A stretch of 64,000 bases of DNA from Paragordius varius (taxonomy: Eukaryota > Animalia > Nematomorpha): the NCBI GenBank assembly GCA_964247055.1, contig OZ176051.1, forward strand, positions 14,198,001 through 14,262,000, read 5' to 3'. Below are positions 1 to 35,957 of this stretch, piece by piece. Position 1 is the stretch's first letter; each line of letters begins with the position of its first letter. The position numbers were made by a program, and so were the translations under genes. The notes beneath the pieces are model-generated. The model was not told the DNA's origin. It saw only the letters and a program-made list of their open reading frames with translations, and searched no databases.

Positions 1-682
1 GCAGGAGGCCAAGCAGACGAAGTAATATACATATTTATAGGGTGAATTTTTAGCAAATTATATGCAATTTAAAATGATTTTAAACTTATAAGGGTAAAGA
101 TTATTTTAATTTTTTTTTAATTATTTTAAAATAAATTTAGATATAAATTTTTTTATCTTTATATATGGCTTAACTCAGAATGATTTTGCAATTTAACACA
201 AAGAGCCCAATATAAACCGTTAATTCGTTGACATTTATTTGAGAAATTAACATGAGGTTTAAGAAATTGAACCTAGCGACTAAAGTATAACTATTTAAAT
301 TTGCATGGAAGCCCATCATATTGAATTATAACTAAAAAGCCATATTGTACACTTATGACTATTCTGTACTGAGACATACTCAAAAGAATGTTTCAATTTA
401 CCATTTCGTTTATATAACTTGCTTTGTAGTCAATCTTAAACTAAACGGTCTGACATACCGATAGTAAAGAATTTTAATTATATATATATGGATTGATTGA
501 CAATTTGTATAAAATAATTAAATTTAATTTACATAATTGAAAAAGTATTATAATGATCCAAAATATCGCTTTGTTTTAATTAATTTTTTTGTATTTTATA
601 CGCGTTAGTCCTCAACATCTTATTTTATATAACTTTAGCAACTGCAACGACAACAGCCACAACACCTGTAGCTCCACCCTGA
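1..682 (+). CDS. Small secreted peptide gene, copy A (5'-truncated by the window edge); exons <1-21 and 639-682
   Basis: 1-21 reads (G)RRPSRR plus 1 nt, then donor GTAATA at 22. Acceptor TTTAG ends at 638. Exon 2 completes the phase-1 codon and reads TTATTTATTPVAPP-TGA. Visible coding bases are identical to copy B (12570-12590, 13197-13240). Confidence 0.65.
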
Positions 683-1541
683 CCCAAAACTCTTCAAAGA
701 AAACCCATTTCAAACTTTTGATTATTTTTTCGTTAATAAATGTTAAATAAATTTAAATTTACGATTCGCAATATTAGCTATGTACCTAAATCATTTTGTA
801 GAGAATTTATATTAATGTATATCTGATGAAATAAGGGGTACCTTTCGAAGACAATCAAATATGAGAGGTTTATATAAATTAATAAATAAACTGGTCCCTA
901 TAATCGATAAATATCTTCAGTTTATCCAAACTTACTTAATTATGTTGTGTCCATTCTGATTTATAATCAGAATCTTAAAATTTTGTGAGTATCAATATTT
1001 TATCTTTTGGTTAAATATTAATTTAATTAACGAGATTACTGGTGTCAATAATAGGAATCGGCTGTTTAAATGACAAAAACATTTAATTATTTATTATTTA
1101 TTTTTGACAATATTTTTCTGCCAGTGTTTTGAGTGTAAAATTCTGTTGAGGACAAAAAGTTTGCTATGAAGACTATACACTTATGAATTTTTAAATGCTA
1201 AAGGCCTTGTTTTTTAGTCCTATATCATATATATTTTTTTAGTTTAAAATGGCTCTGGATATTACCCTAAAACATATTAAAGTGGTTAACATTCTTCACT
1301 GAACTAAATATTAATTAAATTTGTTCATGATGCGTTATTTAGACCATATCTTACAACCAATGTCTTTATGTAAACTGACAGTATAAAAAATAAACAGTTT
1401 AGAGCAGTGGTACTCACTAAATAGCGGATGATCGCATGTAAATCAAGCTTAAAAGTCGTTTTGCACCATTTAGTTAAAAAATTAAAATACTTTGATAATT
1501 ATTTTGATGTTAACGAATTTTTGAATTTCGTTTCGTCTCAT
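1..1541 (+). repeat. Segmental duplication, copy A (direct copy at 12570-14200)
   Basis: Colinear near-identical sequence with scattered substitutions and small indels. Copy B has about 120 extra bp near 13957-14080. Homology ends at TTCGTCTCAT (1541 / 14200). Confidence 0.97.
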
Positions 1542-3710
1542 CACAGGCCAATCTTAATCGGTTAAGCGATTAATGTATGTATTCTTGGCATACTTCATTT
1601 TTAAATATGCCGTCTCACACGTGTAAGTTGATGGAAAAACAGTTAGGAAAACTTGAGCACATATTTAATATTTTCATATTTATTTGGCACATCTTGGCAA
1701 AAACATATCTTTCTTCTCCACCATTCTCCTTGAATATAGCCTCCCAACTGGAATCATTTTTAAAATCTATGAATTCTTCAATGATGCGCCTGATCAAAAC
1801 CGAAATGCTCGAGTTGTTGGATATATCCATATGTCATGAATTTTCAACGAGTTTTAAGCATTTTTAATATTTCTTAATTCTTGAAATCTTAATTTTCTCA
1901 TCGGATAATAATGTTAAATCTTTTTTTATTAAATATATCTCCGCGTTAATATTTTCTTCATAAATCGTTTTAAATGTTGGGATATATAGGAGTGTTATTT
2001 TATAATATCTTGTTTATATTTTATTAATTTTTCTTCAAAAGCAAATATTTGATTAGCAAATTGGGTTATTATTTTGCTCCCTTGAAGATTTGTATTAAAG
2101 GTACTAAGTTCTAAAGTAATGTCGCAGATGTAGGTTAACACAACCCACCATTTGTCACTATTGATTTACTCGTCAAACTTTCTGTTATCTTTTATAAATA
2201 ACAGAATTTGTCTCAAAACAAAAATCTATTTAATACTTTGCTAAGGTATAGCCATCTCACAGCGGTCTACAAAAAAATATCATCAAACTCACTGTAGATA
2301 TCTTCCAGAAGGTTTTTGAATTTACGGCGGTTAAATTATCTGCCACGGATGTGGTAAACTATATCCACCACCGTTTTAATTACTGAATTGAGTGATTTAT
2401 CTTTTACACGCGAAACCAAGTTTTGCTGATAAATAAAGCAGTGAAAGTATAAAAGACTTTGCAAATTATATTTGTTTTTCAAAAGAGGAATAAATCCTTT
2501 GCTTATTCCAATCTAAGAGGACAGCCATCTGTGCAAATCGCAACCAATTCTTTCATAGGTATACCATTCTTATCGAAAATGCTAGTTATGTCGAGAAAAT
2601 CACTTCCTTTCGTGTTATTATTCATTGGTAAAAATTTTAAATATTCCTCGTTGATTATGTTGTCGTTGCAAAATCTCACCAATTGAGGTTATGAACTATA
2701 TCAGTTGAATCAATAGCAATACTAAAATTTTACAGTTTTTTAGAGCCAATAATGTATTGTTAAAAATATATTTAGACATATCATCAATGCTTCGAGCACA
2801 TATTAAATCAGAAAGTTGATTTTTTAATTTGCCTCATGATTTGATCTTTATAATAAATTTATCAAATAAAAAAGTGCATCCATTTATTGGACATACTTTT
2901 ATTAGTTTAGAATCAGTAAACGGTTTATTTTATCTTAAATATAGTAAATTTCTTAAGAAGCTAATGTTTAGCTGCTTATTCCTGGAAGAAAGCTATCGAC
3001 ACTATAGCTTTTACTTTCTGGTACAATTCCTTAATCTTTTTATATTTTGTTTCTTTCTTCATGTTTTGGTAATTTATGAGAATGATGGATTGTAAAATGT
3101 CTTTCAATATTGTATGTTTTTATAATTATGTTGTCCTTAAAGGCAGGTAACAAAATTTTTATTTAAAACAACAAAAAATTTTTCTTTCCATTTTTATGTC
3201 AAGAGGCGATTTTCATCGGATTATATACGTTTTAGCCCAAGATGTCATCCTTAGAATTTATGTTTAAATATTATGTAAATTTTTCAAAAAATCGGAATAT
3301 AATTTGATTTATGCTACAAAAAACCGGTCGAAATTTAGTGATGTTTTGAAATTTTATGGGAATAAAACGATGCAGGATACCAATGAAAAGAATATGTATA
3401 TGCAAGTTTGGGTGAAAGGCTTGCTTAAATACAAAAAAAGTAATGCAATAAAAATCATAGAAAAGAAAATAATGCAGAAACAGAAACAACGTGTGCCAAA
3501 ATTTTAATGTAGGTAAATTTTTAATTGGGTAAAAAATTAAAATTCAAAATTAAATTTAAAGAAATAAATTAATATTAAAATAAGCGAAAATTAGTGTATT
3601 TGTATTTTAATAATTCAGCAATAAAAATAATAATTTAAGTATTAATATGATCGTAGGGCGATCTTAAAGCACTCTTAAGGCCGCATGCGGACCGCGGGCC
3701 GGGTTTGAGA
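1405..3710 (-). mobile_element. Degenerate hAT (Buster/SPIN/GTF2IRD2-like) DNA transposon
   Basis: Minus-strand fragments with stops and frameshifts: ELVAICTDGCPS*IG...FHCFIYQQNL (about 2430-2560), WWVVLTYICDIT...NLQG (about 2080-2160), FPSTYTCETAYLKMK (hAT dimerisation motif, about 1600-1645). CAGTGGTACTC terminus at 1405. GC-rich subterminal GGCCGCATGCGGACCGCGGGCC near 3680-3700; that end is not cleanly defined. Confidence 0.85.
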
Positions 3711-4140
3711 ATGTTTTATACTGTTTCTACTGCGCTTCAAATTATATTAAAACTGGACTCACCAAAATTTTGCTATAAGTTCAATATTCAAGCAAAAAAT
3801 TCATTTTTACGGAACATTTTTTATGCCAAAATTTAGCATATATTAAAAATTTATAACAGCATTTTTGCGTTTAGTTTAAAAAACTTTTCCATTTAGACGT
3901 TGAGATTATCGTAGCCCCCGCATCTATTTTCTTAATTTTATAAAATATTGTTTTGTTATTATATACAATTTATAATATATTTCTCAAAAATATTTTTTAT
4001 AAAATGTGCGCAAATTTCGCCATTTTAAAAGTGTTAATACTTTTTATTATTATTTTTAAGGCCCAAAAATCAAAGTACCAAGCTATATATAAAATAAATA
4101 TCTAGACTGCTAATGATTCACGAAGCAAGAAGACTAATTG

Positions 4141-7140
4141 CATCATCATTTCATCATTCATTTGTATGGGGATTCGCCATTGACGGTACACCCGTTCCAC
4201 TCTTTTCTTGATTTGGCTAATTCTAGATTTAGATTAAGTGATTCGAGGTCTTTTGTGGTATGGGGTCGGCCGGATTTCGCTGATGTTCGACCTTTTCATA
4301 GTTTTAAAAATGTGGGTATTTTTCCGTCTTTCAACTTGTCCAGCCCATTGTAACCGGAGATTTCTAATGACGTTGTTGATGGGGTTGAGATTGAGTATAT
4401 GGTACGGGTTGATTCGGTATAATTGAATTAAGAAGGATTGTGTGCGAATAATATTGTTTTCAATAATTTGGATTCAGCGTTTATGAGTTTGGATTTATTT
4501 GTTTTTGACATCGGCCAGGATTCGGATCCATATGTGAGGACGGGACGGGCTGTAGTGTAAATGGCACATTTAGTTTGTAGTTTGACAAATTTATTATTAA
4601 TTTAAACGAATGGTATTTTTTCCACATTTGTAATATGCGATGTTTAATTGCATGTTGTATTCCGCCACTTGAAAGGGTTGGAAATTGAGTTGATTGTTAA
4701 ATTAATAATATTATTTAAAGATCCAAGCATTTGTTATTTTATCGTAATCATTTAGAGATTGAGACTACTACATTTTTTGTGTACCCATAGAGAACAAGAA
4801 TTACAGCGTACGGAGTTTGATTTAACTTCTTTTTACACATGCCGCATGGGTTTTTAGAGGGTAAATTATCAGACATTTATTTATTGGAGAAATTGTTTAA
4901 GTCCGTAACTTTGTAGGGTGTCATTCCCCAAACAAATTTTCGCTATGAGATCGCTTTCGGATGTCGATGTTATTACGAGGTCATCGGCGCAAAGAATTTG
5001 GTGTGGCATACCAGTTGCGATGTCTTTAGTTATTTCTTCCATAATGACATTGAAGAGGGTTGGGCTTAGTATGGATCCTTGGTGGAGTCCATTTTTTATT
5101 AAAAAACTTTACTTAGTCCAAATGGAGTTTTAATTTGGGCTCTGGTATTACGGTATAAGAGCATTATTGAGGTTACAACCATTCGTCAATGCCTTAACGC
5201 CTAAGAGCCCATGGCATAGGATCTCTTGGAATGGCATCAAAGGCTCGTTCCATGTGAAGAAAAGCGTAGTATAAAGGAGATTTTTTAATGTATGCGCTTT
5301 GAAGTTGTTTTAGCGTGAATATGGCATCTATTGTACTTTTATTTGGGTTGAACCCGCTTTGCATTTTGTTTAAATACAATTTGGGCAGGATTTTAAAGAG
5401 AATTACTTTTTCATATATTTTTATAGTGTGATCTAATAACTTTATTGGACGGTAGGATTTAGGCAGGAGGGGGTCTCCTTTTTTGTATATGGGAATGATA
5501 TGGCTGTTTTCCCTGTCCGGAGGGATTTTTTCGTCTTTTATTATATTGTTGAATAAAGTTGTCCGATATGAGTCAATAATCTGAGGGTCAGTCAGTTTAA
5601 GCATGTCGACCGTGAGTTCCGAAGGGCCAGGGAGTTTTTTATTTTCATTTTTCATAAAGCGGTATGAATATCTGATTCAGTTAGGTTTTCAGCACAGCTT
5701 TGAGTAGGTGTTGATGTGATAGGGGTAGTAATGGGATTGTTAAGGAAAATTTCTGAAAAGTAGGTATGATAGCTGTTTTTAACAATAGCTGGGTAATTGT
5801 TATTGTATTTTTTACTCTCACCGATTTTGGTGCGGATGTGTTATTATTATTATTATTAATTTTAGCCTATTTATATAGTTTTGTTTTTGGTTTTCATATC
5901 GATTTCTTTCGCATACTTTAGAGCTTCTTCATTTTTGGCTTCCCTGATTTCGACATAAACTTTTGGATTCTAGATATGATTTTCTATTAAATGGTGTCTT
6001 TTCCTTGAACCAAATTTTATGTGCCAAATTTTTCTGTTTTATATGCTCTTTCACTTTATTATTCCACCAAAATTGATATTTTTTGGATGATTGTTATTTG
6101 ATTTTTTCCTCCCACCAGACATTCAACTGTATGGATATAAGTTTTTTAAAATTTTCCCAATTAGGTCGAGATTAAAGTTTTTTTTTTCAGTTATGCGTGA
6201 TTTAATTTTAGCCGTTTTCTGCGCGTCATCTGTGAGTTTTTTATAGTTTAAACAACTTATGTCAGATCTTTTGATAATCCTGTCTTCTGGAGATTTTAGT
6301 TTTACACTTGCTATGGTTGTTTCTTAGACTATCAGTGTGATTTAACTGTAGTTCGTATATAGTTTTAACATTGGGGAAATGTTTTCTGTGATATTTCTTT
6401 GTCAAGAACAATCAATCATAGACTTGTGGTTTAAAGACTCATATGTATAATAATGATTATTCCGTTTTTTTTTAAAAAAACTGTTTATTATTGTTAAATC
6501 ACTATTTTGTAAAAAAATCGATCAAACGTGATCCGTTGTCATTTATATCGTCAGTTCCATAACCTCTGTGAATATCAGCAATTTATTGCTTCCCAAAATG
6601 GCCATTGAAATCACCCATTAAAATTTCATTAATTTAAAAAAGATTTTCACACAAGAGATCGTAAAAGCTGGTTTTATGTTGGTTAGATAATCCATTTTGT
6701 GGAGCATAAATAGAGAAAAGATTAAATATTTTATCATGAAGTAAAATTTTAATGGGGAATCGGTCATATATAGTTTATAGAAGTAATATTATCATTGTAA
6801 TCACTATATGTAAGGAATCTAACTCCAGATGTCTTATTAATATTGTTGCCGGACCAATAAAGATGATAAATGAGAATCGATGTAGACCCGTTGTTTTTCC
6901 AGTGGCATTCCTGAAGGGCACATATTGGTATAATGCGCTTTTGTAAAGTTAAAATGATTTCATAGGTTTTTCCATTTAAAGAATTAAAATTAAAAAGGAA
7001 TTTTAGTTTGGTTGCGTTGAATTTGTCATAATTAGTGTTAGAATGTTGTGACATTTGCTCCTATACATTCCAGAATGTCCTTTCTTGCGGAATAACCCTT
7101 CTGAATGTGGGGAAAGAGGCTTAGAATGGGATATTTAAGA
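4141..7140 (-). mobile_element. Near full-length degenerate RTE-clade LINE
   Basis: APE endonuclease N-terminus (ICALQECHWK...LYWSG...GV) in ORF 6764-7054. RT block in ORF 5194-5655 (PGPSEL, YRPIKLL, QSGF...STIDAIF, AFLHMERAFD). (ATG)n-like 3' tail at about 4141-4160. About 3 kb long. No TSD recognised, so the ends are approximate. Confidence 0.88.
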
Positions 7141-7339
7141 TGATACAAATAAAAGAAAATTGAGGTAAGTGGTTAATTGATTATTCATTTACCAAATTAT
7201 TTTAATTAATATTGAAAAGACTGAAAGAATACCACGGAGTACAATATTGTGGGGTTTAAAACGAAAAAAACGTTCCTAAAAGTTACATAAAAATTCAAAA
7301 ATCATGTACGGCTTTCACCATCTTAAAGTTATACACAAC

Positions 7340-8155
7340 AGTAGTGTCAGATCCATTTAAATAAACCAAGGCATCTATCAGCGGTCAGCAATCAGTCCGT
7401 TGCTATTTATATGAACGAAATTTCAAAAGAAGTGGGACAAAATGGTGGCTGGTATTTGCTTTATGCAGACGACCTAATAGTGCTGTCAGACGAGTTGCAT
7501 GAATTGAAATAATTGTTAAGCAAATGGATTGATGTGTTAAGACGATGCGGTTTAAAAGTTAGTAAAAAGAAAACGGAACTCAAAAATTTTGGTGAAAAAA
7601 ACGAGAAAAGGAATTAAAAAAGGTTGCGTTTTAAAAAGTCAGGAGTAATGCAAATATATAGGAGCGATTTTAGCAGCAGATGGTTCTTTAACGCATGATA
7701 TAAATCTAAGAATTTGAAATATTTGGAAAATTATAAAAAGATCTCAAATGTTTAGTGCGATAAAAATATTGACCTAAAAGTCAAGGGTAAGATTGCCAGC
7801 AATGATGTGCAACTTACAGACATGGGCATTAAAGAAATCAGAAGAGAGGCACTTTCAGGTTACTAAAAAGAGAATGCTTAGATTGATGTGCGGTGTAACG
7901 AGGAAAGACTAGGTGAGGAATGAATACATGAGGAAGTACGGAAATCAAACCAATAACCCAAAAGATGATGTTGAATCGTTTACTTGGTTTAGACACCTAG
8001 AAAGAAGAGATAACTACATTGGTATAAAGATTGATGATTATATTGTGAAAGTGAGGGGACGAGCGCGATCTCAAACTTGATGGATAGATACGGTTAAGAG
8101 GACATGGCAAAACTGAACCTAAAACACGAGGACGCTATAGACAGGATTCATGACC
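7340..8155 (+). mobile_element. 3' fragment of a second RTE LINE (reverse transcriptase)
   Basis: LYADDLIVL...KWIDVLRRCGLKVSKKKTE at about 7460-7580, and C-terminal DMAKLNLKHEDAIDR at about 8101-8145. Many stops. Confidence 0.85.
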
Positions 8156-8958
8156 TCTCGAAAGAGTAGTATCATATAATGTAATTATTATTATTGTTGG
8201 ATTAGATTGAATTAATTATTAAAACAGCCTTCCCCATTAAATTGAAATCCAACTTAATATAAAAAAGTTTTATTTGAAATTTTATTTATATAGCATAAAA
8301 TTTTTAAAATGTTTTCTGTTCAAATCTAATTTTCGATGTTCGATTTTGAGCCCAATCAGTTTTTTAGTGTATTTGTTGCATGTAATCGATATGCTCAAAA
8401 TAATAAATAATATAGTTTTCCAAAACCATGCTATATACTGTAATGTGCAGGTGTTGATTAAGAATTAGTTACTTAAACATGCAATTACTGATATTTAAAC
8501 AGCTGTTAACACGCTTAATTAAAATATCACATGTTCTTTTCTAAACTTGCTTAAAAAGAGCCATGTATCGGATAATGAGGGTTGAATTGATTTAACATTT
8601 TGTTTGAGCAGAGTAGGAAGTGTGCAATTTCCACTTTTACAAATGGATATTTTTTACTGCAATTAATTATTGATATAAATACCGTAAAAATCGAAAGTAT
8701 ACAGAAAAAACGCAAAATTATAAAGATAAATGAATTTAAAAATTCCATGTTATAACCTTGAATTTTTCTATGTAAATTATTGCAAAGTATGAAATTGAGA
8801 TGCATATCGGTAGCACAACCAATTACATTGCTATTTAAAACAATAATATATATGGGTTAAAGTTTAAAAAATTTACATTGGTGGTTTAAAAAATGTTGTC
8901 TTTATATTTTTTACATTTTGTGCGTATAATTTTATTTATTACTGTTTAAATTTTTAAT

Positions 8959-9648
8959 TTAAATACTCATCACGTATTCATAATCTCCGTACTCCCCTTC
9001 GTCATAAATTTCATCTTATTTTTCGGGTTCTGGTGGACTAGGGGTTGGGTTTAAATAACCACATTTTTGAAGATTGTGTCCATTTACTGGGATGACATTT
9101 AAACATTTAATGTTAGATTCTGCACTGCTGCTGAGCATATCATCGCTATCACAATATACCCTATCCGTGTTGTGTGTGGAAAGGGAAATGGAATTATTTT
9201 TACCAGAACTTTTGGGTTTTCGGATAACTTGGAAATATGGTACATATTATATATATATGATTATGGTTAATTATATTACTTATGTTTGACTTTCAATATT
9301 CGGATATAGATCGACACAGCATTCAAAAGTAATGGCTAGTTTTGCATTTTTTTAAATTTAAATATATGTTTTATACATTAAAATTTAAATATTAAAACAA
9401 AAATATAAAATTTTACTTTCTATATTCCAACACCAAATTTAAATGGGAGGCTTAATTTTCATTGGTTTTACAAGTAATAAATTTTACAATAAAAAAATAA
9501 AAAATCTTATCTCCAAAATAATTGGATTCTCGGTAATAACATCCATGCCCAGTATGATTTGACAATTAAAGGTATTGTGTCGTGCTTCAGTATAATATAA
9601 GCCAATACTGCTCAAACAAATTGAAATTAATGTTAAAGTTTGATTCAT
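8959..9648 (-). pseudogene. Candidate two-exon secreted-protein pseudogene (exons about 9648-9511 and 9227-8959)
   Basis: ATG at 9648 gives signal-like MNQTLTLISICLSSIGLYYTEA. The donor-like site reads GAG|ATAAG instead of GT. Acceptor TTTCCAAG precedes 9227. Exon 2 is an 89-codon frame with one internal TAA (9018-9016). AATAAA lies about 20 nt after the final stop. Joining the exons needs a 1-nt frameshift. Confidence 0.35.
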
Positions 9649-12469
9649 ATATTTTATTTAACATTGTATTATAACAAAATTCGGTAATTATATTTTTTTA
9701 AATAACTTTTAAGTCCATATATCACCAATAAATGGAATATGATGTTAATATAACGCTAATTAATGTCGGCCCATCTACAAAAATATAAAACAAATTTAAA
9801 TCTTTCCAGTAATAATTCTATTTTTTGTAAGCTTCTGAGAATTATTACTAAAAGGAATATTATAAGAAATAAATGCAAGATTAAATGCACAAAAAAGAGG
9901 GTTAATTTTTTTAACAAAATTTTTTTTCATGAGGCTTGTGACCAGCGAAATATGCCGCAAAAATTTTTATTTGTTCCTAGTTTTTGAAATATTGAGAAAA
10001 ATCAAAATCGAAAAAGTGAATTTTAAAGTTGATTTTAAAAATAATAAAAGTAAATATATTATGGTTTATTATCATTTTAAGAAATTATATATAAACATTC
10101 TAAAATTATATAAATAGGATTTCTATTAAATATCAGTTCAAAACATGGTGTTTTTCTCACTAAGAGACAAATAATTTTTTTACTATATTAAAATATTTTT
10201 TTCAATTATTTACTCGGTAAACTCACTATTAAAATCTTAACATTCATATTTTATTCAGTAAAAAAACTTCTATATCTAAATAAAAATAAAAAAATATTGT
10301 TTTCTATTTTTTCATTTTTTGTAATTTGGCTTATACCTGTTTAAAAATTTACTGTCTTATTTTGGAATTTCACATGAGCGAGAATTATAAAGTATATAAT
10401 CAAGTAGTGAAAAATTAATCAAATATCCGTACATATTTCAGAAATATACTAATTTTTATTAAAACAAACTTTTACAGGGATTTATAAGGATTGTTGGTTG
10501 ATATTCCACTGCTTTTAAATCCTTTTAAACATAAATTATATATTTTAATCCCACTCATGTAAGATTCCAAAATAAAACAGTATAAATATTTTAAACACCC
10601 ATAAACCAGATGACAAAAAATGAAAAAGTACAAAACAATATTTTATAGTTTTATTTTGATAAGTTTTTTGTTCTAAATAAAATGTGAATATTAAGATTTT
10701 AATAGTGAGTTTACCTAAATAATAGAAAAAAATTTTCATATATTTTCATAAAATAACTCATCTGTGTGTTAAAAATGGCCATCTTTTAAACTGAGATATT
10801 TTGAAACCCCATTTATACGATTTTAGGCTGTATATATTGAAAATATCTTCTAAAATGATAATTAACCATAATATCCCAACTATCCTTAATTTTCACTTTT
10901 TGCCCGATTTTGATTTTCTCTCAATATTTCAACTAGGTCGTATACAAATAAAAAATTTTACGGCAAATGAATACGCTGGTCATAAGCTATCTCAATTATT
11001 TTGTTAAAAAAAATTTTGCACACAGTGTAAATAATTCTTCTACAGTCTGAGAGAAGGAGCAAATTTTTTTGCATAAACTTTATCTTACCTTTTAAACCGA
11101 GCAATTAAGGGCCTAACTCTTACAGTCAACATTAGGGGTGTCCAACACAAATTTCGTGAGCTGCTTTAATATTTTTGGTTTTTTAATTTATTTTAAATTT
11201 CGGTTTATATATTTCTAAATAATCGTGAAATTTCGATTATCCACAATTATTTTTTTAGAGCACTTTTTTGCACTGAACAAAGCGTGCTGGACATGCCTGG
11301 TTAACACTATTAGCGACAAGTTCATTCTTACTCAATTTTGTATTTTATCCATATTATATGAAACTTCTCAAGCAATTTATGTAAAAACTTCTTTGAATTA
11401 CAAATATATTTAAGCTTTAGGGGCCCTGTGTGTTTTAAAAATCATAGAGGATCGACCACAGTATATAAAATGATGAGCAATTTTTGGAACTAAAATTATA
11501 TGACTAAATACCCAATAAAAAACCTAGGCTTCATTGTTTTTACATGCTTTAATAAACAGTGGGGTACATATAATCTTGCCCAAAAAGTGGAAAATTGTAA
11601 ATGCGAGTGTTCATATATCATCTTTGTTAGGTATAATATTTGATGTCAAGTTTAATTGTAATTATCCTAATCGAATTACCAGAGATACTTTAATAATTTT
11701 TTTATAAAATAAAAGTATGAGTACCTTTCGGTCTCATAACTTACATAATGACCAATCAAAAATGTTTTTTAAAAAAAGTGTGATAAATAACAAAGCAGCT
11801 TTAACCACAACAACCTATAGAGGATTTTTGGTAAAAACGGTTGTTTAAACCATTTACTCGAATATTTGAACTAAAAAAAACTCATCTATTTCGCTTTTTC
11901 CAACTAGTGTTACTACGGCTGAGAGAGTGATAAATCAAATGTATAAATTAATTATCTAATCTCATGCGCTTTTCTTTTAAAGGTGTCCTAGTTTACTTAA
12001 ATTAAACTCCTTTGTACCAGTTGGATGGTGTTTTAAAGACCAAGAGTCAAAAACAATTAAAAAATTATGATTTTCTTTTGTAAAAATTTATATTTATTGT
12101 GTATTCACAAATTTTTATCTTTATTGAAAAGCTTGATGATGCAAATTAGACATGCCTTTTTTATTATCGCGCTTGGCTATTAAAAGGATCGAAAATCAAG
12201 AGTTAAAGATACTTTTTCAACCATTTTATACGTAAATTTCAAGCAGAAAGGCAAATCTACGGTTAAACGCTATAAAAACATCAAGATTAATTTTAAGGTC
12301 GGATATATAAAATTAGACAACCAATTAATTATTTAAATTAAAAGGTCCTTGACTAATATTCATCCATGAAATATTGTATAAAATATATATTAAGTATGTC
12401 AAGGTACTCAAAAAAAACTATAAAAGAGATTTAGTAATCGGAGATTTGTACTTCATATAATTATACTAA

Positions 12470-13240
12470 ATGAATATAAAATTTTTCTCTTTAAGTTCTT
12501 ATGTTTTATTAATTTTTTTCTTAATTTTTTGTGTTCATGAAACCAATCAATATCGACATCCGAATCGTGGCAGGAGGCCAAGCAGACGAAGTAATTTACA
12601 TATTTATAGGGTGAATTTTTATGAAAACTATATGCTAAAATTTTATTAATTTTATAAAAGTTAAAGTAATTATTTTAGAGTTTTTTTTAATTATTTTAAA
12701 ATTAATTTAGATATATAATTTTTTTTATCTTTGTATATGGCTTAACTCAGAATGATTTTGCAATTTAACACAAAGAGCCCAATATAAACCGTTAATTCGT
12801 TGACATTTATTTGAGAAATTAACATGAGGTTTAAGAAATTGAACCTAGCGACTAAAGTATAACTATTTAAATTTGCATGGAAGCCCATCATATTGAATTA
12901 TAACTTAAAAGCCATATTGTACACTTATGACTATTCTGTACTGAGACATATTCAAGAATGTTTCAATTTACCATTTCGTTTATATAACTTGCTTTGTATC
13001 AACTCTTAAACTAAACGGTCTTACATACCGATAGTTAAACAGTATTATATATATGGATTGATTGACAATTTGCATATTATAAAAAAATGTAAATTTACAT
13101 AATTGAAAAAGTATTATAATGATCCAAAATATCGCTTTGTTTTAATAAATTTCTTTGTATTTTATACGCGTAAAATCTTATTTTATATAACTTTAGCAAC
13201 TGCAACGACAACAGCCACAACACCTGTAGCTCCACCCTGA
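12470..13240 (+). CDS. Small secreted peptide gene, copy B (54 aa); exons 12470-12590 and 13197-13240
   Basis: MNIKFFSLSSYVLLIFFLIFCVHETNQYRHPNRGRRPSRR | TTATTTATTPVAPP*. Hydrophobic signal-like N-terminus, GTAATT donor, TTTAG acceptor with matching phase 1, AATAAA about 50 nt after the stop. Confidence 0.7.
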
Positions 13241-14200
13241 CCCAAAACTCTTCAACGAAAACCCATTTCAAACTTTTGATTATTTTTTCGTTAATAAATG
13301 TTAAATAAATTTAATTTTACGATTCGCAATATTAGCCATGTACCTAAATCATTTTGTAGAGAATTTATATTAATGTATATCTGATGAAATAAGGGATACC
13401 TTATGAAGACAATCAAATATGAGAGGTTTATATAAATTAATAAATAAACTGGTCCCTATAATCGATAATTATCTTCAGTTTATCCAAACTTAATTATGTT
13501 GTGTCCATTCTGATTTATAATTAGAATCTTAAAATTTTGTGAGTATCAATATTTTATTTTTGGTTAAATATTAATTTAATTAACAAGATTACTGGTGTCA
13601 ATAATAGGAATCGGCTGTTTAAATGACAAAAACATTTAATTATTTATTATTTATTTTTGACAATATTTTTCTGCCAGTGTTTTGAGTGTAAAAAAATCTG
13701 TTGGGGACAAAATGTTTGAGTTGACGACTATTACACTTAAAAATTTTTCAAAAACTAGGCCTTGTTTTTTAGTCCTATCATATATATTTTTTAGTTCGAA
13801 ATGGCTCTGGGTATTACCCTAAAACATATTAAAGTGGTTAACATCCTTCAAACTATATTAAATTTGTTCATGATGCCTTAATTAGACCATATTTCATAAC
13901 AATGTCTTTATGTAAACTAGTATAAAAAATAAATAGTTTAGGGCAGTGGTACTCTCAAATTTGACCAGCCAAAATGAAATATATTTTTTTTCGATAGCGA
14001 TGGACCTTATAATGACAAATGCATAGCTGATTGACACATATGCACATGTTTATACTCTAAATCAGCACAATAAATTTTTGCGGGTCGCATGTAAATCCAG
14101 CTAAAAAGTCGTTATGCACCATTTAGTTAAAAAAATTAAAATACTTTGATATCAACATTTATTTTGATGTAACCAATTTTTGAATTTCGTTTCGTCTCAT
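12570..14200 (+). repeat. Segmental duplication, copy B (copy A at 1-1541)
   Basis: Direct alignment by eye to the window start. The true 5' breakpoint cannot be seen because copy A is cut by the window edge. Confidence 0.97.
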
Positions 14201-14584
14201 AGAATTTGTGTTACAGAGTTTGAAAAACTTAAATAAATAGATATTGTATTGATTGTTTATCTTTTTGTGCCTTATTTCTTAAATTTTGACTGAAAATGAT
14301 TAAAATAATTTTCGTAAAATTCAAATTGAATGGCAAAAAAATGTTACATTCATAAACGAAAGACTTGACTTAAGTGTTTTTTCATCACCGATCTTCAATT
14401 GTAGACTTGCTGGCTTAAAATGGGAACAATGTCGAATTATTATATAGTAACTAAATAAACTTTCAAAACAGTATTTTATTTACAAAATAGAAATCTGGTC
14501 TTTAAAACTACCCCAATATGTCGTCGCGGACAAATAATTGAAAAGGTTATAAAATGTTAAATATGCGATGAAGTCACGAGTTTA

Positions 14585-15127
14585 CAGTTGGATACAGCAA
14601 ATTCATTTCAGTTCATCAATTCTAATTGGAGTTAGATACCCGGGCTTGTTTAAAGCTATTTATTTCAAACAATATGGAATAAATTGATGGGAAAAAATTC
14701 ACTTATATAGCATTAATGAACAGAAATATAAATTCATTCAAAAATACTTGATTATTTTTATTCGGAGTAAAATCCAAAGGTAAAAATCTAGCATGATATG
14801 ACTGAATAAGTTAATTATAAAAAAACAAAATAAACCACTTTTTTTGTTTACATCAATGCTAAATAGGATTTAATAAAAAAATAAACTTAATTTTAGGTTT
14901 AGAATTTAATAAATATCATATTTTGCAATATGTTGTATAAAAATGGCGTCCAAGTGGTTTGATACGGATATTTTTACCAAAACTAAATTGTAATTAAACA
15001 TTTGGCTTTTTCATATAATTTTTATAGGGATAGAAGCATAAATTTACATTGGAACCGTTTCGTAGTTTTTCAAAAATATTAGCTTAAATATTATCTGGGG
15101 GGTATTTAGATACTATGTATAGAAGTG
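14585..15127 (-). mobile_element. TTAA-type (piggyBac-derived) MITE, inverted copy
   Basis: Reverse complement of the family defined at 46061-46640. Ends in AAGTG followed by TTAA (15128-15131). Confidence 0.7.
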
Positions 15128-15378
15128 TTAAATTAAAATGTTAAGTTAAATAACTATTTATTACAATTAATACTTTATATTTAACAAATATTAAAAATGA
15201 GGTCTTAAAAATAAATCATACTGTTTTTATATCGTTTTAAAAATATTTTTTAATACCCTGTTTTATGTGAAATTCGGAATCCTGCTTATTTATGGAAAAT
15301 TATTTATTTTGGAAGGGATCAAAAATTTGGGATGTTTGGGGAATGCATATAAAATTTTTTAATATATTGTATTATTAA

Positions 15379-17420
15379 CACTTCGATTCAAATTAGGGTA
15401 TCCATATATCCCAGACCATTTTCAAATTGGTAATTTTAAAAAACTACCGAATTGAATGGCCCTAACTTAAATTTATGCTCCTATCCCAATAAAAATTTTA
15501 TAATTAATCCAAAATATCTAAATAAAATTTAGTTTTAACAAAAAATTCTCGTCTCGAATTAGTTGACGCCAGAATATTTTTGTTTTTTACAAGAGTACAT
15601 CTTACATTTTAAGTTTGCATAAACCCTCTTCCTCTAAAGATATCATTTAAAATATTTTCCGTTACGAAGAATTTATATTTTTGTTATGGAAGAATTTTCA
15701 GATAATTATGATACTAGCAGATATTAATAAAGCGATAATGTCGATAGTGACTCCTCATCTTCGTAGTCAGGTATAAAAAAAATTATTTAGATTTAATATA
15801 AGGGAAATCTACTTTATTCAAAATAATTTGTTTTTATTAAACACTTAAATCCTACTAAAATCAACCAATCCAACATGAGCCGTTTTATCCCCGGCCCAAA
15901 TCAATTGTCCAGAACCCACTTAAAACATTCAATTCTATAATTAAGGCATATTATTTATATACAAAGTTAGGTATCTTGATTGCTATGGGCATTTTGGACG
16001 AAAAAAACATAAAATCGTAACAAACTCATCTTTTTCGACTTTAGAAAAGTTATTTCGAAAAGCATAAACATTAATATGCCAAAAAGGTATAAATATTTAT
16101 ATATATTATGCAAGGTGCTATTTGTGTCCAAGAGTTGACAAAAATCCGTAATATTTTGTCAATTATGCCAAAATCCGGTGTGCAAAAACCACAGAAAATT
16201 CAATTTTTTCCGAACCATCCATTGTTTATCGAAGAGTTTGTCCCAAAAGTAAAATTATAATATGAGTAAGTTCATATATATTTTGTGTTGAGATAGATCT
16301 TGAATTGTTTGCATAAACTATGAAAAATATCTAAATAAATTATTTGGAGATTAAATTATATTATAGTCTATTTCCCTTCCATGTTAAATCGGAATGCGTT
16401 GTGATCATCCATCTAAAATACTCACCAAAATTAACGAGTCGAATAAATATATTTTATCTATTGCCACAATATAATGCCGATAAATATCACATATTTTAGA
16501 TATAACATACATCAATTTATATTAACCAATTTTGATAAATCTGATTATCATAACAAGCCAATCTAACGTCATACCTCTATGTGCTTTAAAATAATTATTA
16601 TTTTAATATGCCTTGATGCAAGTTGAGACAAAACAACCAGGGTAATATAATCGTTTTTTACGAGATGTGCATGGAACCAAATAAATTTTTTAAGAAAGGT
16701 TAAAACTGATAAATGCATTATTTTATAAAGCATAGCAATCACAAAATAATAATTTAATAATTCATGGCAAATATAGAGATGCCCGAGCGGCGGTTAGAGT
16801 TTCACTGATCTAAACATTAAACGATTAACTTCTAGAAAGCAAAAAGCAAGTTTTAATTTATTTTTAAAGATGATCGTAGAATAAAATAGATAATTAGATA
16901 CAAAGCATCAAATATTAAAACGATGTTATAAAATTATGGGTTATCAAGATTTTTATTAATTTTGTTGACCGTGACAAAATCTTGATATATGATTATATTT
17001 CAATATTATTGTATAGTTAACCTAAATATAAAATTTACTTCAGAAGCGTGGAATGTTTTGAATTTAACAAATCTCTTGCAAAATTAAGAGACTAATTTTA
17101 TTGTTGTTTCTCGAACAATAACTGTAAAATATCTTATATAAGAATTTTCAAATATATGTTATAAGCACCTATTAAAAAAATTTACTTTCAAAGATGTTTC
17201 TTTCAGTTATGGTAATGCTAAACATAAATAATTGATATTATAATCCTACTGTATGAAGCATTTATGGACTGGAATCATAATGTATCCTGTTATATTTAGT
17301 TAATTAGGAATTCGTAAATATAAAATAAGCAATAAATTTGAAGACATTAGGTGTTTAATAATATATTTGCTTTTCAAAGGCCGGGCCAACTACCCCAATT
17401 TGAATCTAAAGACTAAAGTG
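15379..17420 (+). mobile_element. Internally deleted piggyBac-like element with MITE-family ends
   Basis: TTAA|CACTTCGATTCAAATT at 15379 and ...AAAGTG|TTAA at 17420. Inside: an acidic Ser/Asp stretch near 15690-15770 and a frameshifted Cys-rich RCYLCPRVDK...FCQLCQNPVCKNH at about 16113-16195, matching the piggyBac C-terminal cysteine-rich domain pattern. Confidence 0.7.
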
Positions 17421-17823
17421 TTAAGTATCGTATTTATATTTTAGATTTTTTGAATTTAACCATTGGATATCATTGAAAAAGTTTATTTGGCATAATGTGC
17501 GCAAATTTTGAGATTTGATTGTAAACCAGAAAAGTGATTTTCTTATGTAAGGCAAGAACCAAAAACACTATCGGAATCAAGCACTTTTTAGCGTAAAAAT
17601 ACAAGACATATTAACATACTCTGTGTTAAACTAAATAATTAAAAATTGGTACAGTTTCATAAAATATTTTATTTAAATCTTCATATTTATAAAATTAAAA
17701 AATTTATAATTTCGCTAGCTTGTGTTTCAGGAGGTAGATTGTATCAGTTGACGCATTGTAAATCTGCCGGATTAGCTATTATTCACAACCAAAATTCGAA
17801 ACTGTGATACAAACGATTTATAG

Positions 17824-21102
<3,279 letters not shown>

Positions 21103-29076: not shown

Positions 29077-30069
29077 CATATAAAAATAATTATATTCAAG
29101 ATAAAATATAAACTCTAAATATTTTTTACGCGTTATCAACAATAACACTATAAAAATGTGAGCTGCATTAAGTTATTTAACTTTATATGCTTATAAATCT
29201 ATATTTATCATAAATATTTTAAACATTTTGTTGTTAATAGAAACCAAAAAAATTAGTTGTTAGCTAATTGCAATTTATGGTGTGAATTTATTTCTGTAGC
29301 ATGAAAATTTTGGACCCTTCCCTCATTTTTCTCGTATTTGCTCTAACCTTATAACTGACCTCAAAATATGGCACATTATATAATTGGGCATAGGATCAAA
29401 TTTGTTTTTGTGAAAAAAAACACGGGTGCGCACAAAAAAAACAATTTTATTAAAAATAAGTAAAAAAGATTAATACTAAACTCACAGTATATAACCGCCG
29501 TGGTATTCACCAAAAAAATTTTAAGGCCTCATAAAAATAGGTATCTTGTCACAAGGGCCGTGTACCATATAATACAGATAAAAAATTTAAAAAATATTAT
29601 TCAGGGCCATAGAACAGACCTTTTCGCCACCGTCGTTTGAGGACCATCACATATAATGTATTTTCTTTACTAGATACAAAGAAGACGTGCCCCTTACTCC
29701 GGTATGCTATGGAATGTGAAATATCTCCCAGGTTTCCAGTGGTCAGATTTGGCCCAAGTTGCGGCCTATGAAAAAGCTGTTAAAGATCAAACGCTTAGAA
29801 ATGAATCCTATAAAATTAAGCGGGAAACTATGCGATATATCGCCGCAACAACCCATAAAAATGATAAATCTTCCCCAAAGTCTTTGAAAACAAATACTTT
29901 ACAAACTACTGCATTGGAATCAAAACAAACCCCTTATTTAACTCCAAACGACACTGACAAAAAGTACATTATACCAAAACATCAGGAGGCTAAGTCAACT
30001 TATGCTGAAAATTTGGACAAAACAAAACCAGCCTATGATGTTAATCTTATAAAATCAATTTTTACTTAA
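27538..30069 (+). CDS. ABT1: Activator of basal transcription 1 / ESF2 pre-rRNA processing protein, 238 aa; exons 27538-27697, 27729-27889, 29674-30069
   Basis: PGVVYL...PP RRM start, YTEGWIEFLDK...AK, LNGTPI, LWNVKYLPGFQWSDL. The two GT-AG introns (31 and 1784 nt) join three ORF-track fragments in frame. Confidence 0.93.
29021..29070. repeat. (TA)25 microsatellite in ABT1 intron 2
   Basis: Pure TA run. Shorter TA runs occur at about 25914-25940 and 44226-44261. Confidence 0.95.
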
Positions 30070-30414
30070 TCATTGGGAATATATAGATCTATTATTAATA
30101 AATTTGCTTATCCGGTATAAAATTTGTATTGTAAATAAAAGATTTAAATGTTTGTTGCCTTTTCTTATAGAGTTAATTGTAATTTGCTTAATTAAAACCA
30201 TTTATTTTTGTTGGATAACCTTAATTGGATATAATTACAGTCCGCCTAAAATCGGGTTAAAAAATGGATGGATTATATATATATTCTGATAGAAAACTAT
30301 ATCAGGATTAACATGGTGCTTGGCTTTGGACCTTACAATGATCTAAAAAGGTTATATACACTTTTTGGTCAATGCATTAAATGGCAAAATTTGTGCACAT
30401 ATTGTGTGCATAGC

Positions 30415-30620
30415 TGTTAAGTTAGATCCTTCTGTCGTAGACACAAACGCACCTATATAATTAAACACTTATAACTCTTTGTGATACACCTAGTTAATGT
30501 TAATTGTAGCTTCAAGCAAAACAGTTAGTATATAATTCTTGTTTTATATTATCACTTACACATGTTTGATTTTTAGTATTTAATAAATGTTTTCTGTATA
30601 ATATAACTTTACATCTATCA
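30415..30620 (+). repeat. 5' LTR
   Basis: TG...CA ends; direct repeat of 34415-34618. Confidence 0.95.
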
Positions 30621-33600
30621 TTGGCGCGGTAATAAACCTGACAAAAATTTCTCCAGAAAGCTTTGATGAAAAGGAAAATTTTGACCGATACGTTTGATAC
30701 ATTCAGCGAATGTTAGCTGCAAAAAACATGACGGCAAACGATAACAATTGCAAGACGTTATTTCTCGCTTACGCAGGAATGTCGGTCACAAAGAAATGCG
30801 AACAATTCCTTTTTCCAGATTCGCTTGATAATACCTCCTGGCCGGACATCATTGAAGCCGGCAGGACAATTTACGAGAATAAGACAAACATATTCCAGGC
30901 CAGATTCAATTTTATAAAACTTCGTCGGAAAGAAACTGAAACATTTACGGAATTTCTTTTACGAGTCAAAACCGAAGCCGCCAAATGCAACTTCAAGCTT
31001 GACATCGATGAAAAAATGCGCGACGTGTTCATTGCAGGCCTGGTAGTGAAAAAATTATAATGATCTGTTTACTAGATTCCCCGATGCCATGTGGGGAAAC
31101 GAAACCGTAACCCTAAAACAAGTGGTAGACATTGGCCCTCAACTATGAAAAAGCACATCAACTAACAACAATAGATGGCCAGATATTGCAGACTACAGCT
31201 CGGAAATACCAAAACAAGTGTCAATTTTGCGGGTTTGGTCATGCACCCGGCAGATGCCCAGCTTGGGGCAAACAATGTTATAAATGCCAAGGCTGGAATC
31301 ACTTCCAACCGTGCTGTAAGATGAAAAGGATTAGCAATGTTCAGCATGTCGAATCTGGATCCACCCCCAAGATATCAATAATAATAAATGGCAAGCCAAT
31401 ACGCATGATTATAGCCACAGGTTCAAGCGTATCTATAATTGATTGTCAAGCGTGGGAAAAAATTGGGGAGCTCGAGTTGCAACAAACAGGCCCATATTTG
31501 TATAGCTATGGTGGACAAAGAATCAATTCCAAGGGTAGTTGTATGGTCACGGTACAATGCGATGGTGAAACAAAATCTCTGGCGTGTATGGTTGTAAGCG
31601 GCAAGAAGGCCCCAGCAATTCTTGGTTGGGATTGGCTACAAGAATTTCCGAATGCCATAAAACAGTTGATAAATTGTCGTAAATGTTTTAATATTATTAT
31701 ATTTGAGGAAAATTCACTTGTTAATAAATTTAATTCACTTTTTTGTGAAAAGTTAGGGTGTTTCACTGGAACTCCTACTAAACTTTTTTAAAAAACAAAA
31801 AACTAAAAATTTTTAAGTGTCGCCGCATCCCGATACCGTTAAAAGAAAAAGTCGACTCGGAAATTAAGAGACTTTTAGAAGCGGACATAATCAAACCATT
31901 AGCCCTACGACTGAGAAACTAACCTGGGCCATCCCTTCTGTTTGTATAACAAAAGCGAATGGTGCCTTAAGGTTATGTGCAGAATCGTGTTACAATAAAT
32001 CCACATACAGTAGATGACAGTCATAATATACCGACATTTGACGAATTAGTTTCCAAAATAGTTAAGGAGAGTCATTTTCGGTAATCGATTTGACAGACGC
32101 ATATCTGCAATTGCCAATAGATCAAGAAAGTCAAAAGTTACTAACAATTACCACACCCCTAGGGTATTTTACATATAAAAGGCTTCCCTTTGGCCTAACA
32201 AGCGCTTCCTGCATTTTTCTAATAAGATTTTAGGTGACTCCCTTGGAACAGCTGTATATTTAGACTATATTTTAATAACAGGAAAAAACCGAGACAAACA
32301 TAAAAGAAACTTAGAAAGGGTATTTAAGCGTCTAGACGAATATGGTTTAAAATTAAGTAAAAGCACACTAAAACATTTTCAACCGTCTGCAAGCTATTTA
32401 GGATATGTTATATCAAAAAACGGCATATCACCAGCCGCCGATAAAGTTAAAGCCATACAAGACTTCCCAAGACCCACAGACAAAACAACATTCAAGTCCT
32501 TCTTAGGCTTAATAAATTTCCACACACGATTCCTCCCGAAATCGCATGGAGGTTTGGCTATACTTCACCTAAGCAGTTATAAAAAACCCTGGATATGGAC
32601 CAAAAACCACGAGGACTGTTTAACAGAGCCAAAAATTTAATATGTCATACCGTTAAACTAACTCCGTTCAACCCTGATTTACCTATAATAATCGAAACAC
32701 ACGCCTCGAATAAAGGGTACGGAGCAGTGTCACTATAGACCACGGAGGAGGGCATAAATAAACCCATCGCCTTGCATCTAGAAATTGGTCTAAACCCGAA
32801 GAAAATTATTCAGTGATAGAAAAGGAATCAAAAGCCATACTTTTCGCTTTTTATAAATTTAAAACGTTTATTACAGGGAAGAAGTTCGAACTGCGTACTT
32901 ATCACAAACCACTAATAAAGCTGTTTGGAAATAATCGTAAATTAGACCAATAAATAATTCCAAGCTACTACGTTGGATATATAAAGCTAGCGAATTTAAT
33001 TACAATCTACGGTACATTAAAAGCCACGAAAGCATTGCATATCCATTGTCCAGCATGCCGACAGAACCACAACAACAAGACACAGAAAGCCTTCAAACAG
33101 CAGAACATGTAAGATTTGTCAATAGTAATATTCAATATAAATCGTGACCATATTGGAAGCCAGACCGAAACCGACCCTGTATTAAAACAGGTAATAAGGG
33201 CACTGAGAACAAACAACTGGTCCAATAAAATATTACATCCATTCCACTTTTTTAGAAATGAAATTGAAAATAAATACGGGTTATTGGATAGATTAATGAT
33301 TCCCGAATCTCAAAAAAGAAATATCTTACAATTATTACACGTCGGACACTCCGGATCCAAAGCAATGTACGAAGCAAAACAAATAGTCTTTTGGCACAAC
33401 ATGGAAAGCGACAAAAAAAGTGGGTAGATACGTATAAAAAGTGTCAAGAAAACCGTCCGATGCGAAAACTGCCCACATAAAATTGGAACACAAATACAGC
33501 AATATGGTAGAGATTACATCTAATATAGCATGCCCGATAGACAATTATTATTGGATAGTTCTTATTGACAGTTATTCTCGATGGGTCGAAGTTAAACTAT

Positions 33601-34414
33601 CCAAAATGATATCGACCAAAAATATCTTAAATTTCCTAGACGAATGTTTCAGTCGATATGGATCTCCAAGAATGATAGTAACCGACAACGCGTCTTACTT
33701 TACATCTGAGGAGTTTAAAAAAGTCATGGAAACGGGAAACATCAAACATGTAACATCAGCTCCCTATCATCCAAAAACTAACGGAATGGTGGAACGAATG
33801 ATATATACCCTCAAAACACATTATCGGTCAGCAAAAGACGATGACCTACATTCAAAAATAAATAACACGCTTTGGGGATACCGCACTAACATACACAGTG
33901 CTACAAATACATGTCCCGCTCAACTTTTCCCAAGTACGCTACCCAATCCAATCACATGGCTACAATACAAACAAACAGACTTCTTGGACGATGTACAACC
34001 GAATCACGAATACCATGAAAACGAAAAAGTTTATATAAATGAACTAGCGAATGGTTGGCGAGAACGAATTGTAAATAAAGGACTCGGGTTACTCTCATAT
34101 GAAATACGAGATGATAACAAAATCATCCGAAAACACGCCGACCAACTGAGACCAAGGGAAGGAGGTGAAAGAATAATGGGATAGACAATTTCACCCGAAG
34201 AAACTCCACCATCGCATGACCTATATGTTAGGTACCCTACTGCCACGACCGAAGCCCCGACCTTACCCCCCCCCCCCCAACCCTCGGAACCCATTATTAA
34301 ATTTACATCCCAAACACCCACTATAGCACCTACCACTGACACTCATACAGAACGGCGATACCCTACACGAATCCGACACCCATCACATAGATATCAAGGA
34401 CAGGGAAAGAGTGA

Positions 34415-34618
34415 TGTTAAGTTAGATCCTACTGTCGTAGACACAAACGCACCTATATAATTGAAAACACTTATAACTCTTTGTGATACACCTAGTTAAT
34501 GTTAATTGTAGCTTCAAGCAAAATAGTATATAATTTTTGTATTATAATATCACTTACACCTGTTTGATTTTTGGTATTTAATAAATGTTTTCTGTAAAAT
34601 ATAACTTTACTTCTATAA
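34415..34618 (+). repeat. 3' LTR
   Basis: About 9 substitutions and 2 small indels relative to the 5' LTR, counted by eye; terminal CA changed to AA. Confidence 0.95.
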
Positions 34619-35957
34619 ATAGCAAAGCTAATCTTTAATATGTGTAGGCTCCCTCCGTTAAAAAAGGGCAAGTTCCAAAGGCGCATAGGCCAAGATTTCA
34701 CGATAAAATTCGACATTAAAAAGAGTTTTTTCCGAAAAAAATAGATTTTTGCTCAAAAATGTATTTTTTATTGTATTTTGAAACAAGGTGGAAACGGTAT
34801 AAAAACACTATAAGATATTATATTGCTGAACATTTATATCTCAAAATTATAATTTACTCTTGGATTTAAATTTGAATGAAATTTTGTAAAAAAATAAATT
34901 ATTATAACATAAATTTAGGGTCGAACGAATGTTTACATCATAGTTCTTAAATGACTAATATGTTTAATGTTATAGAATTATATGAAAGGTTTTTTAAATT
35001 TTTTAAATCGTTTTTATACCGTTTTATCATCACTCAAATAGAATGTAATATTTCGGCTTTTTTGCGTTCATAAGAGAATAATCCATTTAGAAGGACAAAA
35101 AAATTGGGTCTTTTGGACTTTTATAAATATAATTTTTTTATGTAGTTTTTAATGTTTAGTGATATTTATTGCAATGAAGCCTATAGTTTTCTTCAAAAAA
35201 TATTTACCAAAATGTGCGCAATTTTTGCCATTTCCTTATATGAACTAGTTGCCACTTAAATGGTAAAAAGCTTATTATATCTCTCTTAAAACCCCAAAAT
35301 AAAATTGATTTTTCATTTTGGATATTATTGTAAAAACTGTGTAATTGAATTTTTACAACACTAAAAATTAAAATTGCCAAATGCGGGCACATTTTACAAA
35401 AAAATTGAAGCGTTATCGTGCCTATTATATTTGAGAATTTATATTAATTCTTAATCACTAGTTAGTGTTTTATTTTTAACTTTTAAGTTAAGTTTTAAAC
35501 TCTACACGATTGACCGATTTAACATCATATATATGTATATATGGTTATACAATTATATTGCATTTTAAATGGAAAATTTAAAATTGTGTTAAAGATTATT
35601 TTATACCGCATGTCTTGTCATATTTATAAAACACTTTTTCTAGCTATATAACTTTGAAAAATAATTTAGCTTTAAAATATTTTTTAGAAATAATGATACC
35701 ATATGGGTTTAATAAGGGGTGACTCAAAAAACCGCTGGGTAGAACGCCATATTAAGTCAAATTCGCCATTATGTAAAAAAAATAATTTGGTGCGGCACGT
35801 TTTTAAAAACCAATAATGCCATTTATATTTGTTAATGGTTTTTTTCGTATTAATTAAAACTAGCATTTTCGTAGCGTTTTTTATTGAGTTACCATATTTA
35901 ATTAACATAACTGTGAATTATAGAAACTTAACCATGTGGGGAGCGCTTGCGAAGATA

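Follow-up and report, generated by a model that had tools for sequence, protein, structure and literature searches.

The candidate locus and its signals

The locus lies on contig C2 of a 110.5-Mb assembly of 44 contigs, within a stretch of 64,000 nucleotides that was analyzed as a whole (the window; positions below refer to it unless preceded by the contig) and that has a G+C content of 25-36%. The contig, with 27% GC and genes of invertebrate type, is animal DNA and not human. A putative first exon on the forward strand (12470..12590, copy B) starts with an ATG at 12470 and runs for 40 codons plus 1 nt, specifying a leader and then HETNQYRHPNR-G-RR-PS-RR. The proposed phase-1 intron (12591..13196, forward strand) has 606 nt, 22% GC and the form GTAATT...TTTAG. 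It is followed by a second putative exon (13197..13240, forward strand), which consists of 2 nt, 13 codons and TGA, has 55% GC and encodes a Thr/Ala/Pro tail. With a slash for the exon border, the donor of this copy reads AA/GTAATT and the acceptor, at 13196/13197, TTTAG/CA. When joined, the exons give 54 codons in phase, made up of a hydrophobic leader, YRHPNR-G-RR-PS-RR and a tail of 14 Thr/Ala/Pro-type residues. The coordinates, the in-phase joining of the frames and the translation in the initial annotation were re-read from the sequence, and all of them are correct.

The hydrophobic stretch of the predicted leader covers residues 5-22 (18 residues), and four Arg lie within the 15 residues past the hydrophobic core. 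The Gly plus dibasic site (PNR-G-RR) occupies residues 31-36 and a second RR residues 39-40, the same in copy A at both sites, so that the candidate precursor of 54 residues holds a single Gly-dibasic unit. In exon 2, the second codon position is C in 13 of the 14 codons (the split first codon included), and positions 1 and 3 are variable.

Several signals surround these exons. A TATAAAAG box (12419..12426, forward strand) precedes the ATG by 51 nt. No other ATG occurs between the box and 12470, and an Inr-like TCA follows 36 nt after the first T of the box; the candidate ATG itself has T at -3. Two AATAAA polyadenylation-type signals (13293..13309, forward strand) follow the stop codon by 53 and 64 nt. 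Both the box and the AATAAA signals are kept in copy A. Between 8.2 and 20 kb, only three stretches reach at least 52% GC per 44 nt, and two of them are the putative coding islands, whose GC content is 48% (58 nt) and 55% (44 nt) in surroundings of 22-25%. The peptide locus (approximately 11.3-13.9 kb) is unique DNA apart from its twin, and the genome matches of the interval 12400-13300 were the twin and two intron fragments of approximately 80 nt. Taken together, the box, the AATAAA signals, the GC-rich islands in unique DNA and the forms of the splice sites would fit a small gene.

The window also contains a four-exon ARF (ADP-ribosylation factor) gene at 17830-21099, the first intron of which is 28 nt long (17979-18006). 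Its donors are ATAG/GTTCAT, CAAG/GTATTT and ACAA/GTATTT; none has G at +5, and one (ACAA/GTATTT) has A at -1. The AA/GTA donor proposed for the peptide locus is legal for this genome, as the bona fide ARF gene uses the same form. The donor consensus is degenerate, in-phase GT/AG pairs are easily found, and the splice signals carry almost no information, which is a point in favor of a chance reading frame. In DNA of 73% A+T, hydrophobic leaders and GT/AG pairs come easily. A further, phase-0 donor (AGG/GTGAAT) is present at 12610/12611, is kept in both copies, and shifts the frame of exon 2.

A second copy within a tandem segmental duplication

The initial annotation had claimed a second copy at 1-682 of the window. 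This copy (copy A) is present, and it is complete in the assembly once the sequence before the window is included. The last 21 nt of its exon 1 lie at 1..21 and the remainder at C2:14197901-14198000, so that the whole exon occupies C2:14197901-14198021 and begins approximately 100 nt before the window start. An intron of 617 nt (22..638) and an exon 2 identical to that of copy B (639..682) follow, all on the forward strand. Copy A is upstream of copy B, at a spacing of 12.56 kb. Searching the entire 110.5-Mb assembly at the DNA and the protein level, to make the paralogue count that had been proposed at the outset, gave these two copies and no more.

Both copies belong to a larger repeated unit. 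Block B (7203..13954) is homologous to block A, which starts 5302 nt ahead of the window and ends at window position 1415; the two are arranged head to tail. The duplicated blocks measure at least 6.7 kb, the repeat unit is approximately 12.5 kb, and weaker homology extends further left; the whole duplicated region takes in window 1-14200 and 8.4 kb ahead of the window. Divergence between the blocks is a mosaic: each end differs by approximately 8-10%, the interval 8745-11532 by 0.3%, and the peptide locus in patches. A reverse-transcriptase-bearing insertion (approximately 4140-7200) is carried by the second unit alone. The mosaic suggests an older duplication that was partly homogenized by gene conversion, this being the pattern expected of such a history. 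The two peptide copies are passengers of a recent tandem duplication of approximately 12.5 kb, not the result of a gene duplication in the narrow sense.

At C2:12.80-12.83 Mb, three paralogous blocks of greater age are 71-73% identical to window 8405-9885. They have the neighboring minus-strand gene in common with the window and not the peptide locus, which favors a chance origin of the latter. A search of the three blocks for a diverged peptide copy found no comparable ORF, the homology ending at approximately 11508.

The neighboring gene itself (8405-9885, minus strand) has an ATG at 9648 and a 70-codon exon at 9022-9231 with a codon LLR of 17.9. Paralogues of this exon are found at C2:14194450-14194659, C2:12801627-12801809, C2:12807465-12807638 and C2:12833584-12833769. 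The five genes of this family, all on C2, probably encode a secreted Cys-containing protein. They share a signal-like first exon (MNQ[TI]LT) and 57-68% protein identity, every frame is open, and the family has no Pfam match. The member in the window is 2.8 kb from the peptide locus, in divergent orientation. Between the two lies a large imperfect palindrome of the foldback type (9908-11035, arms of approximately 500 nt), with relatives ahead of the window start and at C2:12.83 Mb. The same neighborhood holds a dispersed repeat of approximately 170 nt (11130-11300). A high-copy dispersed repeat of approximately 270 nt (approximately 13935-14200; 536 first-look candidates, 81-84% identical) begins where the duplicated block ends on the right.

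The initial annotation had stressed that all comparable coding nucleotides agree between the copies in the presence of intron variation. The observations themselves hold: within the window, copies A and B agree at all 65 coding nt available for comparison, and the intron alignment of 625 columns has 38 substitutions and 27 gap columns. As evidence of conservation they fail, since recent duplication with patchy homogenization accounts for the identity. Within the intron, 42% of 21-nt windows and 25% of 44-nt windows are perfect between the copies, and the intron contains a perfect run of 172 nt; the runs surrounding the exons reach 87 and 81 nt. The identity of the exons is thus no higher than that of intron windows of equal length, and the support that exon identity had lent to the gene is lost. 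That the duplication covers at least 6.7 kb, diverges by 0.3% to approximately 10% in patches, and has longer perfect runs in the intron than around the exons argues instead for a chance frame carried along by its surroundings. The proposed peptide architecture itself is written in the DNA, with the leader, the Gly-dibasic site, the second dibasic site and the Thr/Ala/Pro tail.

Comparison of the full exon 1 between the copies revealed 7 substitutions, all within the first 40 nt. Five of the nucleotides fall in 4 non-synonymous codons (N2K, F5N, L8S, S10F) and 2 are synonymous, and the differences look neutral. An alternative alignment, in which compensating +2/-2 indels in the leader replace the 4 substitutions, was judged less likely from standard alignment scores and from the local substitution-to-indel ratio. 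Over all exon sequence, 7 of 165 nt differ between the copies, and the excess of conservation over the intron is non-significant. The mature peptide part is identical in both copies; longer intron stretches are identical too, and there are two recent copies only. Given the mosaic divergence, the longer perfect runs in the intron and the neutral-looking ratio of 5:2, a selection test between the copies is uninformative, as is the identity of two recent copies in general. Against a chance frame, both copies are open and free of indels, even though indels flank the ORF.

Coding potential, chance expectation and competing readings

Codon usage was scored with a codon LLR trained on 8,783 codons from long ORFs at kinase loci, a measure with low power here. 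The leader scored -4.7, the mature part of exon 1 +2.9 and exon 2 +5.7. The total for exon 1 was -1.8, lower than that of any of the 208 real coding segments used as a test. In both islands the annotated frame outscored the other two sense frames. One antisense frame of exon 2 reached +5.1, and over the GC islands the antisense and sense values were 6.1 versus 2.9 and 7.2 versus 6.3. Because antisense frames score alike or higher, we take the positive scores to reflect mainly GC content. The codon usage of the leader is background-like, and this, together with the antisense scores, counts toward a chance frame. The third island mentioned above (15874-15920, at least 52% GC), which lies in AT-rich unique DNA, contains a minus-strand frame with a codon LLR of 8.0.

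Searches for relatives gave no family, in line with the initial annotation, in which the peptide had not been recognized. A word search with exon 1 over 5.8 billion proteins produced no candidate relative, Pfam had no match for the candidate peptide, and the ESM Atlas gave no usable match (recognition score 2098, compared with the 2300 reached by 91% of known-family proteins). The lack of relatives and of a family match in these searches again favors a chance frame.

How often such a locus arises by chance was estimated from a 3-Mb Markov-3 sequence, with a signal-like ATG ORF carrying G[KR][KR] within 40 residues as the criterion. Per 64 kb, this null produced 3.7 leader-like ATG ORFs, and 0.064 that also carried G[KR][KR]. 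Reversed real DNA (248 kb) yielded 8 leader-like ORFs and 0 full matches, with a motif rate that implies approximately 0.03 per 64 kb. A leader plus a Gly-dibasic site is therefore expected at approximately 50-110 chance loci per genome, and the features listed in the initial annotation by themselves prove little. When all features are required, including the box and AATAAA, the null estimate falls to about 1-2 chance loci per 110-Mb genome, a value uncertain by a factor of a few because the leader filter was written after the candidate had been seen. In a set of 670 random ORFs from this genome, TATAAAA at -70..-35 was seen in 5%, AATAAA after the stop in 25.5% and both in 1.8%. For a promoter control, a candidate CCHamide-like gene at C2:7.95 Mb, the peptide exon was located and the first exon was not.

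We slightly prefer, and only tentatively, to read the locus as a real, lineage-restricted orphan gene of two exons, the secreted product of which would be cut at the Arg-Arg sites. It is also quite possible that there is no gene here, and that the frame arose by chance in AT-rich, TE-rich intergenic DNA, crossing two GC-rich relic islands. The apparent duplication and conservation would then be due to the recent copying of a 12.5-kb segment and its partial homogenization by gene conversion, and the 50-110 loci with a leader and a Gly-dibasic site are expected anyway. Three observations sit poorly with chance. A well-placed TATA box and AATAAA are jointly rare (the 1.8% given above), the GC-rich islands in unique DNA call for an explanation, and the 13 of 14 second-position C in exon 2, a post hoc count, has a probability of approximately 3% under uniform decay of an ACA repeat. 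If the gene is real, it adds one more orphan peptide-precursor gene, missed by standard gene finders in a little-studied, very AT-rich parasite-like genome, and a candidate signaling or secreted effector peptide. If it is not, the locus is a caution that 73% A+T and degenerate splice sites readily yield leaders and in-phase splices, and that "conserved exons" arise easily inside young segmental duplications.

A third reading, which we regard as unlikely, is that the locus is transcribed and gives another product. One version is an unspliced product, of 59 aa from copy B or 50 aa from copy A; the read-through tails are unlike each other and hence unconserved, which speaks against it. Another uses the stronger-looking donor at 12610/12611, whose retention in both copies is in its favor, and joins exon 2 in another frame to give a Gln-rich decapeptide. 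That frame of exon 2 has a codon LLR of -1.6, compared with +5.7 for the annotated one. The 54-mer may alternatively be a single-pass membrane micro-protein, its 18-residue stretch serving as an uncleaved anchor and its Arg-rich segment remaining in the cytosol according to the positive-inside rule; the unclear signal-peptidase site and the strong positive charge directly past the hydrophobic core are consistent with this. Finally, it may be a cationic, glycosylated defense or effector peptide in which the Arg-Arg sites stay uncut. The uncut mature part, 33 residues long and including 8 Thr and 5 Pro, would have a net charge of approximately +5, and it shows neither the amphipathic nor the Pro-Arg-Pro repeat pattern of known proline-rich antimicrobial peptides.

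Other explanations fared worse. A structured non-coding RNA gene was rejected: Rfam gave no match for window 1-20000 at E up to 1, and the folds of the two islands were unremarkable on either strand, with z-scores between +1.3 and -0.9. An ORF derived from a transposon or repeat was rejected since dispersed copies are absent and the locus is unique save for its twin. The origin of exon 2 from a decayed CAA/ACA microsatellite is doubtful, as TRF finds no array.

Proposed processing, known peptides and other features of the window

If the preferred reading of an orphan secreted-peptide gene is right, transcription would start approximately 30-36 nt past the TATAAAAG box, and the 606-nt phase-1 intron would be removed. 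The hydrophobic N-terminus would direct the 54-residue product into the secretory pathway, and the leader would be cut, probably near Cys21 or Thr25 and not before Gln27. Convertases would then cleave at both Arg-Arg sites. A carboxypeptidase and an amidating enzyme would convert YRHPNR-Gly into an Arg-amide peptide of 8-12 residues, the length being set by the leader cut. The Thr/Ala/Pro 14-mer would be freed as a C-terminal peptide, possibly O-glycosylated. These steps are modeled on the established actions of prohormone convertases, carboxypeptidases and peptidylglycine amidating monooxygenase. We infer from the sequence that the candidate would be transcribed, spliced, secreted, cleaved, amidated and possibly glycosylated, and likewise any signaling role.

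The leader passes a simple hydrophobic filter. It is without a canonical site with small residues at -3 and -1; the candidate sites are after Cys21 or, with His at -3, after Thr25. The initial annotation had pointed out that an N-terminal Gln could cyclize to pyroglutamate. Such a start is unlikely, because a cut before Gln27 puts Asn at -1 and Glu at -3 and so breaks the established -3/-1 rule for signal-peptidase sites.

A full-text search of the literature did not find the hexapeptide YRHPNR or a catalogue of hairworm neuropeptides. In a literature search on peptide endings, a paper on natalisin ranked top and was, among the best 15 of 968 matches, the only one to use PNRamide as a peptide ending. 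Natalisin and tachykinin-related peptides end in FxxxR-amide, and those of Diptera in FxPxR-amide, for example DPFVPNR-amide (PMC4730192). Drosophila NTL5 has the last three residues of the candidate, Pro-Asn-Arg-amide (PMC4730192, PMC5825034), and the processing signal of Gly plus a dibasic site is present in both. However, the defining Phe of natalisin is at -5, where the candidate has Arg, with Tyr at -6. Natalisin precursors carry many peptide copies over hundreds of amino acids, whereas the candidate has one peptide in 54 aa. Natalisin has been reported from arthropods only, and no sequence homology to the candidate is demonstrable. Because the defining FxxxR-amide feature, with its aromatic residue at -5, is absent, and multiple peptide copies are absent as well, we do not file the candidate with natalisin.

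The candidate also resembles in form the small amidated precursors that hold a single peptide. Like these, it would have two short exons, a leader, one Gly-dibasic site shortly past the leader and a C-terminal spacer; unlike these, its mature peptide fits no family and a clear signal-peptidase site is absent. The reading as a peptide gene is plausible, and if the gene is real, it would belong to the known kind of small orphan secreted propeptide genes.

Drosocin and pyrrhocoricin, proline/arginine-rich antimicrobial peptides of insects with O-glycosylated Thr and infection-induced expression, are short, secreted, cationic peptides with Arg, Pro and Thr, as the candidate would be; a defense peptide was the second proposal of the initial annotation. 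Peptides of the drosocin type are defined by a Pro-Arg-Pro-type motif, which they repeat, whereas the candidate has only H-P-N-R and R-P-S-R. Its Thr residues are in a separate neutral tail and not in the cationic core, and the organism is not an insect. Lacking Pro-Arg-Pro repeats, the candidate is a poor fit to a drosocin-type antimicrobial peptide. The nlp-29 and cnc clusters of nematodes resemble the candidate in being tiny two-exon genes for secreted peptides that are arranged in tandem and homogenized. They differ in that their peptides are Gly/Tyr-rich and their repeats gene-sized; here the unit is 12.5 kb, includes transposons and another gene, and is present in two copies.

If the worm is an arthropod parasite, a secreted peptide specific to the parasite could, with its Pro-Asn-Arg-amide end, imitate hormones of the natalisin/tachykinin type at the receptors of the host, as an effector of host manipulation that was recently amplified in tandem beside a secreted-protein family. 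We consider this idea very improbable.

Other features of the window were noted in passing. An LTR retrotransposon at 29686-34454 contains pieces of gag, aspartic protease, reverse transcriptase and integrase in several frames (Pfam), with direct repeats at 30526-30625 and 34524-34623. On the minus strand, 57573-59164 holds two long adjacent or overlapping frames (372 and 178 aa) that include a zinc finger of the Spin-doc/ZBED type and a body resembling a hAT transposase; a decayed relative is present at approximately 1500-3430. A weak match to CRF-binding protein was also seen within the window. A single-exon ORF of 98 aa at 54811-55107 has a twin Cx3C pattern that, by eye, resembles the small Tim (Tim8/13) chaperones of mitochondrial import.
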